Source: Tetramitus jugosus (Eukaryota; Protista; Heterolobosea). Taken from it: a DNA stretch of 64,000 nucleotides. Under the pieces are notes generated by a model. It was given only the letters and a program-made list of their open reading frames with translations. It did no database searches and was not told the DNA's origin. Both the position numbers and the translations under genes were made by a program. Positions within the stretch are counted from its first letter, which is position 1. Every line of letters begins with the position of its first letter. Positions 40,916 through 47,386 of the stretch are shown here, in pieces. The stretch covers positions 1 to 64,000 of the forward strand of contig OW569349.1 of NCBI GenBank assembly GCA_937625935.1, read 5' to 3'.

Positions 40916-42970
40916 ATGCAAGCAGCATTGAGACTCGCCAAAATTTCAAGCAGGCAATCAACCGCCGCACCCTCAACAACATCATTCGTACAACGTTCCT
41001 ATGTCGTTGGTAAAATTAGAGCCAAACCAAGAGACGATGAAGCAGAACCCTCACTGATGGAAGAGATTGAAGAGGAAGAAGCAGTACCATCTGAATGGAC
41101 CCGAGCTCACTTTTCTGCAGAACAACTCAATGAGCTTGCTGATGACAGAACCATGGAAATTGAAAAGAGAATGGAAGCTCTGATTCACAGAGATCAAGCA
41201 TATGGTGATGCATATGCTTCAATGAAGAGAGGCACTCACATCACACCAGAAAACATCAAAACTGACATTGCTGATCCTCATGAATTGTTTGATTCACAGT
41301 TTGGAATGGATCGTGATATTCGTCTCGTCGAACGTCATCAATTGTTCAAAATGTCACAAAAGAATGGCTTGCCAGTATTGAAGAACAAGCCACGTTTCCG
41401 CTCTGGCATTCCAACAATGATTGATCCTGTGGGTGAAACATTTGCCAAGTTTAAGAAACAAACAAACTTTTACAACAAAAATCCATACCGATACGCCAAT
41501 GCTGAAAAATTGATTGAGAATAAGGAGTCTAGAGATGAAATGTCTCGCATTATTAAGCAGCAATTGCAGAAACAATCGACAGAGGCTAGATCCAGTGCTG
41601 AACAGTGGTTGGAAGAGGACATGGATATGAGAAATTATTTGTCAAAAGCATCTGTTGCAGAAGCCGCACGTATCGAAGCAATCACCAGTGGAGCTACCGC
41701 CGAGGAAGTAGAGGCAGTAGTCAATTCGTTTACTCAGGAGCGGACCAAATCAACACTGCTCGACAATGACGACTTGGATTCATATTTGGCCTCTCAGGAG
41801 AACGCTGATGAATCAGAAGAAGGAGGAGGCTTCCAAGTCCTTGATTCTCTTACTTTTTGGAATAACAACAAACAATTCAAGGAGAGAAAGTTTGATAATT
41901 TTGATTTGAATTTGCCAGTAGCACCTGAATTGTACTCTCTCACTGCTCCAAGGAACATTACTGAGGGAGAATTAAACAAATTGTATGTCATCAATTCTGG
42001 TGACTACAATACGTTCTTTGGAGAGTTGGGTTTTGGTGGAGAATTGGACAAGGTTTTTGAGAGAGTTGCACAGAGAGCTCTCATGATCAGAGAGCCTGTA
42101 TTGCCTGCTGTTGACTTGCTCACTCGAATGAAGGCCAATAATGGTAAGCGCACAGATTTAAATCAGAGAGGATTCGTTTTTACTGGTATTAGAGGTGGAG
42201 GAAAGACTGCATGTCTCTCAATTGTTGCCCATCATGCATTCAAGAATGACTTTTTGGTGTTTTATATTCCATCTGCTCATCATTGGACTCATGGACCTCA
42301 CTATGTTGAGCCGTCCGTCTTGTTGAAGGGATACTTCGATGTGCCAACACCATCTCTCGCCTTCCTCAGACAGTTCAGCAAAGCCAATTCCAAGATTTTG
42401 AAGAAGATGAAGCTTTCCAAGTCCTTCAATTTACCAGTCGAACTTGGTGAGAAGCAACCAACCAACCTGCAGGAACTGATTCAATTTGGTGTCGTTTCGG
42501 AAGATAACGCATCCATTGCATTTAAGTTATTAATGGACGAGTTGGTTGTCAATAATGATGTCCCAATGGCATTCATTGTTGATGATTACAACTTCTTCAT
42601 GGACACAACTGGCTTCTCTTATGGTAACTTGGCAGAGTTTGACACCAAGATGCCAGAACCTGTTCATGCTACACAGCTCACAATTGTTCGTGGATTGAAT
42701 CGTCTCTTGTTACAAAACAGTCCAAACAAGGTGTTTGTGGCCGCTGCTTCCAACAAGTGGAAACAACAAAACGAAACGAGATTGGAAGACTATCCACTCG
42801 AGGTTCTCAACGTTCCTCGTTATAGTGAGGTCGAGATGGGTACTATGTTGGATTATTACTTCTCCGCATATTATATTGAGGGTGTAGCAGCTCACACGGC
42901 AGAGGATTTGCTGTATTTGACTGGTGCAGTGCCAAGTGCTTTGTTCAATGAACTATCTGTGTACCATTAA
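40916..42970 (+). CDS. DAP3: Mitochondrial ribosomal protein mS29/DAP3
   Basis: Presequence-like N-terminus; ALMIREP, P-loop GIRGGGKT, FIVDDYN, VPRYS..E; its stop codon is part of the TTAA target site. Confidence 0.88.
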   Translation: MQAALRLAKISSRQSTAAPSTTSFVQRSYVVGKIRAKPRDDEAEPSLMEEIEEEEAVPSEWTRAHFSAEQLNELADDRTMEIEKRMEALIHRDQAYGDAYASMKRGTHITPENIKTDIADPHELFDSQFGMDRDIRLVERHQLFKMSQKNGLPVLKNKPRFRSGIPTMIDPVGETFAKFKKQTNFYNKNPYRYANAEKLIENKESRDEMSRIIKQQLQKQSTEARSSAEQWLEEDMDMRNYLSKASVAEAARIEAITSGATAEEVEAVVNSFTQERTKSTLLDNDDLDSYLASQENADESEEGGGFQVLDSLTFWNNNKQFKERKFDNFDLNLPVAPELYSLTAPRNITEGELNKLYVINSGDYNTFFGELGFGGELDKVFERVAQRALMIREPVLPAVDLLTRMKANNGKRTDLNQRGFVFTGIRGGGKTACLSIVAHHAFKNDFLVFYIPSAHHWTHGPHYVEPSVLLKGYFDVPTPSLAFLRQFSKANSKILKKMKLSKSFNLPVELGEKQPTNLQELIQFGVVSEDNASIAFKLLMDELVVNNDVPMAFIVDDYNFFMDTTGFSYGNLAEFDTKMPEPVHATQLTIVRGLNRLLLQNSPNKVFVAAASNKWKQQNETRLEDYPLEVLNVPRYSEVEMGTMLDYYFSAYYIEGVAAHTAEDLLYLTGAVPSALFNELSVYH

Positions 42971-45515
42971 GGTGGCGGTCTACCAACTCCTCGAATAAAT
43001 AGGGCTCCTCGTATAAAATGATTTTTGTTTGAGAAAAAAGAAGCAAGATGTGGGTCGATCAAAAAACATCAGAATCCATACACAAGTGTTAATCAGCCAC
43101 AATACTGTGAATTCTCGGTTACAAGCAACACTTTCGTGCTTTGTGATTTCTCTGCGGCGGAGGTTCGGGCTTCTTTATTTGGGCTAGTTGACAGGAACAT
43201 TGAATCTCTCTGGAGAATACAAAAACACACTTGGATGATTAGAGTCATCCACACGTTGTCATTAAACAAGTTCTGAGTCAAAGATGCAATACTTGGTAGA
43301 GTTTCATATTGGAGTCTCCTCCAGTAGATGATTTCGGTTGTTGTGTGTATTGGTTCAGAGGATGGACGATGGACGTTTTCTTTCAAGACGCGAGATTGAA
43401 CCACCCAAGAAGAAATAAAGCATTTGCCAAACGAGTAACGTCATCTTTCTGTTGCCTAAATCTCAGTTTCCTCTAAGCTGCGGAATTGGTGCAGTTGTAA
43501 AAATTTCCGTTGAGACTGTCTTTACAACGGCAACGGCCATCTACCTCGGTTTAAAAAGCGCTGTCTTTTTCGCTGTTTGATTCAACTCACACAACAAACA
43601 CAACACACAACAAATACAATAACATTATGCCACGAGGTGTGCCTAAGGACGGCAAGAGAAAGAGAAAGAGAGAGACTGTCAAAAAGGATGAATACTCATC
43701 ACATTACGTGGTCAAGGTCGGTCTGAAGTCTCTATTGTTGCATTGTCCAACTCTGTTACCAATCATACAAACTCAAGCTCTGGAGATTACAAGGATTGCT
43801 CTTCGACTCACAAGATTTATAAACATAATTGTTTTGAGGCACTTGGAGAACAATTGTGATATCCCTCTCTTGAATCAAGGATTTATTCAACGAATCGGTT
43901 CAGTGTTGTTTGGACGCAAGTCGAAGACAAGAGACGATAATGTCAACCTCATCAACGGATCAGTCAACATGGATGACGTAAAAATCAAGCTAAGGAAGAT
44001 TTATGAGAAGTTTTCCAAATCCATCAATTACGTTGCCAAGTCTCTCAATGTCAATATTTCTAACATGCTCAAGTTCACATTGGAACAAAGACTGAGAAAG
44101 TATTTGAGAGTGAGGATGAATCAATTGCACTATGATCAATCAATCCCAAGGTCTGAATACAGAAGAGTCATAGAATACATCATCAGAAAGTTGACATTCG
44201 TCACTCCAGTTTATGATTTTGTCAAACTGCCTCCAAAAGAGTTGATAGAGACTATTCCTGTGTTGATCCGAGAGGTTCGAACACTTGTTGGTGCTAAAAC
44301 TGACGAAGTGATTGATGAATCGTTTGTGAACAACAACACCAATAACATGCTGAAGTTTTACTGGCATGCTCAACAGTTTCTGATTGGCAATGGAACGAAA
44401 TCATTTGCATTGTTGCCCTTGTCCCACTTTAAATGTAGATGCATGGAGATTGGTACAACGGACCTGATAGACATGCTCCAACAGAAGAAGAAACCAGGAG
44501 GACAAAAGAAGGGTAATGTACAAGTTATTGAACCCATTGAATTGAAATACAATCTCAAGTGTTTGAATGTTGGAACAAAGAAGATTCAAATCGACTCTAT
44601 CAGAACTGACGGTATTCAGGCCTCTGTTGTTCTCAGACATCAACTCGTTGGCAATCACAAGAACAATAAGGCAAAGGAATCCAAGGGCCAGAAAGAAGCA
44701 AAGAAGAGAAAGAAAGAAACAAGTATGAACGAAGGTGCTGAATATTTGGTTGGGATTGACCCGGGTATTGTTACGTTGGTGAGTTGTGCAGATTCAGATG
44801 GCAAGAAGTGGGAGTTGTCTAACAAAACATATAGACATCTGTCCCACCATTCAAAAAACTCCAAGCGATTGTTGAAATACAAAGCAGAATGGAACGAAAT
44901 GAATGAGAAGAACTTGGATGAACTCCATAACTCAATCAAACAGGCCCGTGTACCAACAAGTGGTCTGTTCCTTGAACACATCAATTCTGTATTGAAAGTC
45001 GAGGATGATTTGTTGAATTTTTATTGCACCCCAAAGGTGAAGAGACTGAATTGGGATAGCTATATAATGAGAGATAAGACGATTGCCAATGTTATGAATG
45101 ACTTTCGAAAGAGAGCAAATGGAAGAAGCATGTTAATTGGGATGGGCAATGCTGGTTTCTCACATGAAGCCAGTCAAGCATAAGAGAATAGACAAGAATG
45201 GAACGTTGAATGTCTCTGTCGTCCGAGGAGTTAAACAGTGTGCAACCACTATATGTTTAGTGACTCACAACAGAGACATCAATGCGGTCAAGAACATGCT
45301 CCATCTACTGAGAACAGAAATGGATGGACAGTCACGTCCCGATGCCTTCAAGAGGAAGAAAAAGGTCGCAAAAGAATTAATCAAAATGGTGGAACACCTC
45401 CAAGGCTCACTCCATCAAGCTGCTATGTAAGTCCCGATTATGTAGGAGCGTTAAGGTGTCTTATCGGGAAACCATAATGTTTTTATTATGGCTTGATCGA
45501 CAGTAGACCGCCACC
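42971..45515 (+). mobile_element. Non-autonomous TIR DNA transposon carrying Fanzor1; 13-bp TIRs, TTAA target-site duplication
   Basis: TTAA(42967-70)|GGTGGCGGTCTAC(42971-83)...GTAGACCGCCACC(45503-15)|TTAA(45516-19); no recognisable transposase inside. Confidence 0.93.
43627..45430 (+). pseudogene. Fanzor1 (TnpB/Cas12-related RNA-guided endonuclease) with internal deletion/frameshift at ~45163
   Basis: N-terminal VVKVGLKSLL, IRTDG, RuvC-I VGIDPG, LSNKTY, IGMGNAGF; then in another frame VRGVKQC-x4-C and RuvC-III NRDINAVKNM...RP..F.R; RuvC-II E-x-x-TS-x-x-C-x-x-C is absent. Confidence 0.9.
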
Positions 45516-45539
45516 TTAAGGGACATCGAATAAAGCGAA
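45385..45539 (+). ncRNA. Predicted Fanzor omegaRNA (scaffold to the right end, guide from flanking DNA)
   Basis: Nested stems ATCAAG/CTTGAT (45414-19/45492-97), TCCCGAT/ATCGGGA (45432-38/45463-69), CCATAAT/ATTATGG (45472-78/45485-91) between the ORF end and the right TIR; boundaries inferred. Confidence 0.65.
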
Positions 45540-45706
45540 TCGAAATCAATTTTTATTGTTCCAGGAGTCGACTCTGCTTTTAGTTTGTCACCCAGGTTTT
45601 TCTCGCTCCGGACAAAAATGTCTTGTCGTCAAAAGACACCCGTTGAAGAATATAAACCTCTTCCTTGTTGCTGAGTTGCCTACATTCGACAAAAACACAA
45701 AGAGTC

Positions 45707-46040: not shown

Positions 46041-47386
46041 ATGATACTAGCAAGTGGAAGTAACTCAATGGGTCAATGTTCAGCATCAGGTCATAAGACT
46101 GGTGCGAACTCACACTTGTTTCAATATGAGATTGAATCGGAAGTGGACGTCCCTTTCCCCACCAAATCTCTGCGTTCTGTCCACTGTGGAAAACAACATT
46201 CACTGTTCTTAACGAGTAAGTAATATCGTCAATCTCTATTTTGATACTCTTGAGATTAGACATTTTCACACGGGGAGTGTTTAACTGATCCCTCTTAGAA
46301 TGTGGACAGGTTTTTGCTTGTGGGAACAACCGAAATGATCAGTTAGGTTTCGGCGAAGAGATTGACGAAGTATTTGATGCTCAGAGAGTATCAAGCTTAG
46401 AATATTTCAAAGTTTCATCCATCTCCACTTTTTCTTCCTTTTCATTGTTTGTGACAAATGAAGGACAAGTGTATGGAGTTGGTCTCAACGATTCTTTTCA
46501 GTTAGGTCTTTCGAATACGAAGAGAATAGTGAAACCTCAATTAATTCCTTTTACTGTACCATCCCCATCACCAATCTCCAATAATGAAGAAGACGATACA
46601 GTGCCTATCATCCAATGCGCAGCAGGAGAGAACCATTCCTTGTTTCTATCGAGAGATCATCGTGTGTTTGGATGTGGAGACAACGAGCTGGGTCAACTTG
46701 GAATGGGTGATAATTTTGAAGCAGGAGAGGTCATATCTCCTGTTGAACTTTTGTGGTCAACGAGTTGGAAGGAAAGAGGACTGACAGTTGCAGCAAGTTC
46801 AACAGGAGTAAAGCACATTAGTACTGGCGCCCATCACTCGGCAATCATAACGAACGATAATTCTATCCTCGTGAGCGGTAGTAATACCTATGGCCAATGC
46901 GGAGCGGCATGGGACATAAAGTGTGTCACTTCCTTCCATTTGGTCACCACAGTTGACCATGCATTCTTGAAGGGCATTAAAATCTCTTGTGGAAGGAGGC
47001 ATACCCTGGTGTTGGACGAAGATCACAGAGTGTGGGCATTTGGGGACAATTCATTCGGTCAACTAGCGATCGACGAAGAAGAGAAGGGAGTGTGTTATCC
47101 GACAGATATCACAAATAGAATGGAGCATTTAATGGACACAGATGAGATCATAACAGATATAGAAGCAGGATTTAATTACTCCATGTTTATTACATCGAAT
47201 GGTAAGGTTATTGCCTGCGGAAGCAATGCGGAGCACAAACTGGGTGTGCGTGACCAATCCACGGGAGATAACAGTACCAAGATAAGGACCCCACACTTGG
47301 TCTATTCTCTGAAAGAAACTCAAAACAGGATTCATATTGCCTGCGGATTCTTCCACTCCATGTTGTATGAGGTTTCTCCTGAATAA
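46041..47386 (+). CDS. RCC1-repeat protein; intron 46216-46298
   Basis: GSNSMGQC, CGKQHSLFL, GDNELGQLG, CGRRHTL repeats; splicing restores the frame. Confidence 0.9.

Follow-up and report, generated by a model that had tools for sequence, protein, structure and literature searches.

The stretch of DNA analysed here (the window, 64,000 nucleotides (nt); positions 1 to 64,000 of contig OW569349.1, GenBank assembly GCA_937625935.1, Tetramitus jugosus) lies on contig 6 of a gene-dense eukaryotic assembly of 26.35 Mb in 56 contigs, and it contains a mobile element of 2,545 bp that carries a gene for a Fanzor1 RNA-guided nuclease. The element extends from terminal inverted repeat (TIR) to TIR at 42971-45515 and is bounded by TTAA on both sides. 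The left TTAA (42967..42970) would act as the target-adjacent motif (TAM) at the empty allele, judging from Fanzor1 biology (PMC13565253), and the right TTAA (45516..45519) is recognized as the second half of a target-site duplication from the flank sequence and the empty allele. The two 13-bp TIRs, referred to as type A and starting with 5'-GG, form a perfect pair (GGTGGCGGTCTAC; 42971..42983 on the + strand and 45503..45515 on the - strand, 13/13 matching). This sequence has two exact occurrences in the window; at two or fewer mismatches a mean of 0.28 matches is expected by chance, and 0/100 shuffles reach three. A preliminary description of the locus had reported the perfect TIRs, the TTAA on either side and the lack of a recognizable transposase between them, and these observations hold, as no transposase was found inside 42971-45515.

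The element sits directly behind a host gene for the mitochondrial ribosomal protein DAP3/mS29 (684 aa, 40916..42970, + strand; Pfam DAP3, E 1.5e-32), whose product is unchanged by the insertion because its TAA stop codon lies within the left TTAA. At least three copies of the family have used a host stop codon as their TTAA target (the window copy at 42967-42970, L026 and L039), several others are inserted 10-46 bp behind a host stop, and a few split host open reading frames (ORFs; for instance L025, L028 and L029). Empty alleles of the window site occur in public sequencing runs X2 and X4, where position 42966 is joined to 45516 and 2,549 bp are skipped, corresponding to the element plus one TTAA. 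The empty-allele contig accounts for all of the local depth in X4, a groundwater run, and for a depth of 1,179 versus about 3,050 in the left flank in X2, contig depth not being equivalent to allele frequency; the assembly may itself derive from X2. An assembly or chance artefact is ruled out by the multiple copies together with the empty alleles. The site is polymorphic and sibling copies are about 98% identical, in agreement with the earlier view that the family is young.

The Fanzor1 ORF of the window copy is cut to 518 aa (43627..45183, + strand). It contains the TDG and GIDPG motifs, with the RuvC-I aspartate codon at 44758-44760. When aligned globally to five siblings of about 98% identity, the window copy proves shorter by 125 bp at 45155/45156 (deletion site 45155..45157). 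The lost segment encodes the RuvC-II glutamate (DE-x-MTS) as well as the first half of the zinc finger with its first CxxC. The distal coding part (45157..45430, + strand) follows out of frame and includes the second half of the zinc finger, the RuvC-III aspartate codon (45275-45277) and the stop codon (45428-45430). Thus, the preliminary assignment of a Fanzor1-type ORF was correct for TDG and GIDPG, which are in frame, but the C-x4-C, NRD-x-NA and RP..F.R motifs it listed, though present, belong to a different frame from the ORF at 43627-45183. With the RuvC-II glutamate deleted and the distal part frameshifted, the window copy is nuclease-dead. Upstream of the ORF, a segment common to all Fanzor copies (43463..43626, + strand; the matches of about 15 copies start at element position 493) is likely the promoter and 5' leader.

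Full-length Fanzor1 proteins of 637-649 aa are encoded by 16/20 copies read, making the protein repair suggested in the preliminary description unnecessary, because natural intact copies exist. These 16 copies and four metagenome homologs match the published Fanzor1 pattern (Yoon et al.), which consists of a RuvC-I DPG, a glutamate six residues before the zinc finger and a RuvC-III RD; the window copy fails it through its deletion, and the Fanzor2 pattern is matched by none. An intact sibling carries PF07282, and SpuFz1 (8GKH) was its sole match in a phmmer search of the PDB (E 1e-15, aa 131-614). A Foldseek search with a model of an intact copy, of low confidence with a predicted local distance difference test score of only 45, ranked the solved Fanzor1s SpuFz, GtFz and PpFz at the top (E 2e-12 to 7e-6), above TnpB (E 4e-3) and Fanzor2 (E 0.22). 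The length of the intact copies agrees with the enlarged REC of Fanzor1 proteins (about 600-700 aa). Motifs, best match and fold therefore support the Fanzor1 identity proposed earlier, and a Fanzor2/IS607 identity was rejected. By their coding sequences, the intact copies are under purifying selection, with ratios of nonsynonymous to synonymous substitution of 0.09-0.31 (about 0.2) between copies. Close homologs of 59-85% identity come only from a few metagenomes; a metagenome scan with the Fanzor alignment returned one short locus, and a scan of viral contigs two distant Fanzors of 22-24% identity.

A genome search with the TIR, as the preliminary description had proposed, yielded many TTAA-flanked copies with intact Fanzor genes, but with two types of end instead of one. 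Exact type-A ends with TTAA number 37, including all 26 exact matches of the bare TIR, and TTAA precedes 26/26 of the latter. A second TIR, type B (GGATGTAGTTCG; 19 exact matches), also encloses Fanzor and likewise has TTAA and GG ends, such that the termini are GG..CC (5'-RR..YY-3') in both types. Complete copies measure 2.2-4.6 kb, and all of those read have TTAA on both sides except L036, with TTGG on the right. Halves of the Fanzor gene and the end types are shuffled among copies, a pattern that fits the prediction of gene conversion. The region between the left end and the Fanzor leader is variable: in the window copy it is a type-A-specific segment (43031..43462), and longer copies have other cargo at this place. 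A search of the long copies (3.4-4.6 kb) for a transposase found none; they contain part of Vps35 (E 1e-43) and other host cargo instead. For instance, Pack-type cargo in L029:3138-5570 (and in L027-L038 and L040) comprises a fragment of Vps35 in which 189-234 aa remain open, together with a 135-bp tandem repeat; an ORF on the opposite strand resembles an F-box plus a chromodomain by eye, a likeness not confirmed by Pfam.

More distant relatives are found at other loci. L041 (G000:C32:2808-4989) belongs to a second, much more distant Fanzor1 family with type-B ends, is frameshifted and lies near a contig end. L045:2437-4560 and L046:1631-3900 hold homologs of about 64% identity with different right ends, in which no GG/TTAA end was found. 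The internal stem motif of the right end, described below, is changed in both to match their own right ends, suggesting that the same Fanzor lineage may ride another carrier.

The right end of the element is predicted to encode an omega-RNA. The stop codon and the right end are separated by 85 nt, and folding places the scaffold at 45416..45519 (+ strand), with a small hairpin over the stop codon followed by a long hairpin. In the predicted fold, the long hairpin is closed by pairing of an internal TTAAGGTG (45451-45458) with the TIR end and the TTAA duplication. The internal GTTAAGG is kept in six divergent right ends, with a predicted stem of 6-10 bp, and is absent from the right end of L044, which is associated with a transposase only (stem 3 bp). 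The 15-16 nt that directly follow the right TTAA (45520..45535, + strand) would serve as the guide, by analogy with SpuFz1, whose RNA reaches 14-15 nt past the element end (PMC10432273). The empty allele presents TTAA followed by the exact predicted guide sequence. In a soil metatranscriptome available as contigs only (X10), both element ends are deeply covered (41800-42993 and 45424-45574), whereas depth over the ORF falls almost to zero. One X10 contig leaves the DAP3 gene and ends 23 nt inside the element, an overlap too short to count as bridging. In run X8, an empty allele is longer by about 15 bases within the stretch that the predicted guide would match (right flank 45520-45540). This allele is known from a single contig of depth 4 from a divergent strain; it is possibly a cut-resistant allele or plain slippage.

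The nature of the carrier emerges from elements that share these ends. A type-B right end in this genome, L044, adjoins a broken non-Fanzor ORF, a transposase remnant. With this ORF as query against 1.84 billion representatives, the full-length relatives P0007-P0011 were recovered. They carry the motifs D(F/Y)RWSQRR, HDQD, D-x-GH, a zinc finger and TQ-x-IE-x-G-x-N; three acidic motifs occupy RNase-H-fold positions, a D-x-x-H signature is present, and the last glutamate is preceded by a zinc finger. Compared by eye, P0007-P0011 resemble Kolobok_5_TrFo (PMC9587614 supplement) motif for motif. P0009 passes the PF20700 cut-off, and the best matches of a transposase model are ISCth4 (IS256/Mutator) and Hermes (hAT), members of a clade that includes Kolobok. 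Other searches added no relatives: a metagenome scan with the transposase alignment gave no match, the transposase profile had no real match among PDB sequences, and a PF20700 profile search of the genome gave none either, but its control was likewise silent and the search is thus uninformative.

Elements from other assemblies connect these transposases to the Fanzor ends. In L049, a complete element bounded by TTAA, type-B ends enclose P0011, whose frame is broken close to its end; L049 shows 84% identity over 165 bp to the left ends of Fanzor copies of type B. L051, likewise complete, encloses an intact P0008 between ends that are 11/13 like type A. TTAA-GGTGGCG ends adjoin P0008, P0007 and P0010 in L051, L050 and L056, respectively; L050 and L056 start with TTAA-GGTGGCGGT, and the left end of L050 matches that of the window element at 76% over 55 bp. 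An alignment of left ends further revealed a subterminal motif, CG-W-ATAAATAG...CTC...C-x-TATAAA (42984..43030, + strand), common to both end types and to the transposase-encoding elements; this is likely a transposase-binding region. As judged from these alignments, both end types of the Fanzor elements are homologous to the ends of elements encoding a Kolobok-type DDE transposase. Kolobok elements generate a TTAA duplication and obey an RR..YY rule for their ends, unlike piggyBac (PMC9587614), and the GG..CC termini bear out the earlier remark that purine 5' ends fit Kolobok. The preliminary description had also proposed mobilization in trans by a Kolobok-like transposase and a search for an autonomous partner. 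Homologous ends do flank a transposase with Kolobok motifs, and partners exist in other assemblies (L049 and L051, for example), but the present genome yielded broken remnants and no intact transposase, and mobilization in trans is therefore inferred. The longest remnant (G000:C1:696954-698296), with stops and frameshifts, lies 16 kb from a type-B right end with Fanzor.

The best explanation, which is judged probable, is that the element is a non-autonomous Kolobok DNA transposon carrying Fanzor1 and an omega-RNA in place of a transposase, with homing proposed as the function of the nuclease. A Kolobok transposase acting in trans would excise the element and insert it at TTAA. Transcription of the right end would produce an omega-RNA; the TIR and the duplicated TTAA would form part of its scaffold, and the adjoining 15-16 nt of flank would be its guide. 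Fanzor1 would then recognize TTAA directly before the guide-matching flank, a junction present only at the empty allele, and cut about 14-21 nt downstream of TTAA. The break would be repaired from a filled sister or homolog, with copying proceeding from the right end of the element. Full repair would restore or spread the element (homing), and partial repair would give left-truncated copies in which TTAA and 9-16 bp of flank are duplicated. The window copy makes no active nuclease, but it could still move and serve as a source of guides for protein from intact copies.

Some truncated copies of the family have structures of this kind. Verified type-A right ends number 24 versus 12 left ends. 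In three of the six left-truncated copies read, the left junction shows an extended duplication consisting of TTAA and the start of the right flank (16 bp in L031, 13 bp in L039, and 20 bp with one mismatch in L043), and each scar string is limited to its two junctions within 410 kb. None of the complete copies (0/16) duplicates more than TTAA at its junctions. Scars of TTAA plus 9-16 bp require that the left broken end carried 9-16 bases of the right flank, which places the break shortly past an empty TTAA site. This is the region of Fanzor1 cleavage, at 14-17 nt on the non-target strand and 14-21 nt on the target strand (PMC10432273). The scars suggest, in this small sample, the footprint expected of a Fanzor cut followed by incomplete homing. 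The L043 mismatch could reflect either repair between homologs or a mutation acquired afterwards. As a cause of the long duplications, ordinary gap repair following excision was ruled out, because it keeps both ends and copies no right flank leftward.

An alternative accepts a Kolobok-Fanzor1 element and attributes the long duplications to one-ended or aberrant transposition or to retroposition of element RNA by an enzyme of the long interspersed nuclear element (LINE) type, leaving Fanzor another role or none in this host. Truncation at the 5' end with duplications of 7-19 bp is typical of retroposition, Fanzor elements of Chlamydomonas with such duplications were read as products of one-ended transposition (PMC3627910), and there are just three scars beside three truncated copies (L032, L040 and L042) with no extended duplication. 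However, all three scars start exactly at the TTAA of the TIR boundary and end 9-16 bp on, inside the Fanzor1 cut window. There is no poly(A) tail, excision by a transposase does not put right-flank bases on the left broken end, and the Fanzor gene is under purifying selection. This alternative is considered unlikely.

Mobilization by a resident piggyBac transposase, which is also TTAA-specific, with the Kolobok-like ends as a relic, is very improbable. Its attraction is that the genome encodes piggyBac-type transposases with long frames (582-968 aa), while its Kolobok transposase copies are broken. Nevertheless, none of the 13 PF13843 matches in the genome lies at type-A or type-B ends, the RR..YY rule followed by these ends separates Kolobok from piggyBac (PMC9587614), and the ends and subterminal motifs are homologous to those of Kolobok transposase elements. 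The piggyBac-type transposases are located at G000:C34:198515, C18:150044, C30:266267, C18:38735 and C39:393561, and two pairs appear to be duplicated. The remaining possibility, raised in the preliminary description, of a TA duplication with AGG..CCT ends made by a Tc1/mariner-type enzyme would give an identical empty site, such that the 42966->45516 joint cannot separate the two duplications, and Tc1/mariner-type genes do exist in the genome; it is largely refuted, since the outer T and A are invariant at 26/26 exact type-A ends and, with a single exception, at the type-B ends read, the DDE_3 matches are mostly broken and lie elsewhere in the genome with none at these ends, and the transposase found between such ends belongs to the Kolobok/MuDR/hAT clade.

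Several results weigh against the proposal of a Kolobok-borne, homing Fanzor1. The transposase copies in this assembly are all broken (C1, C47 and C50) despite recent movement of the family, in a search that scored the best candidates in one haplotype, and no element encoding both Fanzor and transposase was found. The Kolobok assignment is supported by the ends, motifs compared by eye and one Pfam match. Folding of the scaffold is weakly supported (z -1.3 in the window copy, -1.2 to -1.5 overall), and RNAalifold on six right ends found no covariation support and no supported consensus; the scaffold structure thus stays a prediction. Finally, the scar survey covers six left-truncated copies, with about ten further one-ended copies outside the count.

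Among characterized systems, Spu-1/SpuFz1 of Spizellomyces punctatus (PMC10432273, PDB 8GKH) is similar in protein length (about 640 aa) and in having a single ORF between TIRs with no transposase inside, many intact copies and, after the stop codon, 75-105 nt up to the right end for an omega-RNA, which in the present family is a prediction. Unlike the present elements, with their 13-15-bp GG-ended TIRs and TTAA, Spu-1 has 30-nt inverted repeats and a CATA TAM, and no partner transposase was found for it, whereas shared ends identify a Kolobok-type partner here. The Kolobok superfamily (PMC9587614) shares the TTAA duplication, RR..YY ends, short TIRs and a transposase with a DDE triad, D-x-x-H and a zinc finger before the last glutamate. 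The Fanzor elements differ from it in being non-autonomous, and Fanzor is not included among the listed Kolobok accessory proteins (KolX, DEDDh exonuclease, lambda-like exonuclease, RecQ helicase and His-Me nuclease).

Similar architecture occurs in the insect-virus Fanzor1 elements HVav-1, SFav-1, PUgv-1, HAgv-1 and HAmn-1 (PMC3627910) and in Fanzor2 elements with TIRs from molluscs (bioRxiv 2023.08.09.552727), which have 13-bp TIRs and no transposase. In these elements the TIR and the duplication also lie within the terminal stem of the RNA, as in the fold predicted here; their 4-bp duplications are TTAN, compared with a strict TTAA in the present family. No superfamily assignment was possible for them. 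The Helitron2-Fanzor1 elements CRe-1/2/3 of Chlamydomonas (PMC3627910) also show an excess of 3' ends, 5'-truncated copies and 7-19-bp duplications directly behind the target tetranucleotide. Their carrier is a Helitron and their target TTTT, and the pattern was read in 2013 as one-ended transposition (Bao and Jurka). That a DDE/TIR element shows it too suggests a shared cause in Fanzor and not in the carrier. GtFz1 of Guillardia theta (PMC10432273, PMC11423790) is a Fanzor1 for which a TTAA TAM has been shown experimentally; unlike the present elements, its loci have no inverted repeats or transposase association, and the proteins share 13% identity in the fold alignment. Restorative homing by TnpB of IS200/IS605 and IS607 (PMC13565253) provides the working model, in which an RNA-guided cut at the empty site is repaired from the filled copy. 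It has been shown in bacteria with HUH and serine-recombinase carriers, unlike the eukaryotic DDE element described here, where sequence footprints are the evidence.

Homing is demonstrated for TnpB in bacteria, whereas in eukaryotes it is a proposal (PMC10530073, PMC13565253), and no paper showing Fanzor homing in a eukaryote was found in the literature searched. Fanzor1 and Kolobok are each known kinds, and their pairing appears to be unlisted. A 2026 review gives Mariner, Sola2, MuDR, Harbinger, Helitron, Crypton, hAT, EnSpm and piggyBac as Fanzor carriers (PMC13565253), and Kolobok is absent from the carriers in the literature searched, Repbase itself lying outside that search; this agrees with the preliminary description, which could not place the pairing among well-characterized Fanzor systems. 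A bolder reading, towards which the evidence leans slightly, is that a Kolobok-captured Fanzor1 lineage shifts between two end types and is homing now, that the scars are footprints of cleavage of empty alleles in vivo, at least one of them between homologs, and that the Chlamydomonas duplications are explained likewise. If true, the host, which has intact nucleases, guides that are known and alleles both filled and empty, would allow eukaryotic Fanzor homing to be tested directly.

The host role of Fanzors is an open question, to which this family contributes footprints that fit homing. Its many intact nucleases, predictable TAM (TTAA), readable guides and polymorphic sites offer a natural test bed. 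It would also add Kolobok to the Fanzor carriers with a partner transposase named, which was impossible for the similar TTAN/TIR Fanzor elements described earlier. The 637-aa Fanzor1 with its predicted TTAA TAM is a further candidate editor, next to GtFz1, which already has a TTAA TAM.

Two other features of the window deserve mention. Positions 1-820 consist of a CCCAAA telomere repeat array, placing the element 43 kb from the chromosome end. Downstream of the element, positions 46445-47386 hold an RCC1-repeat gene (Pfam E 1e-53).

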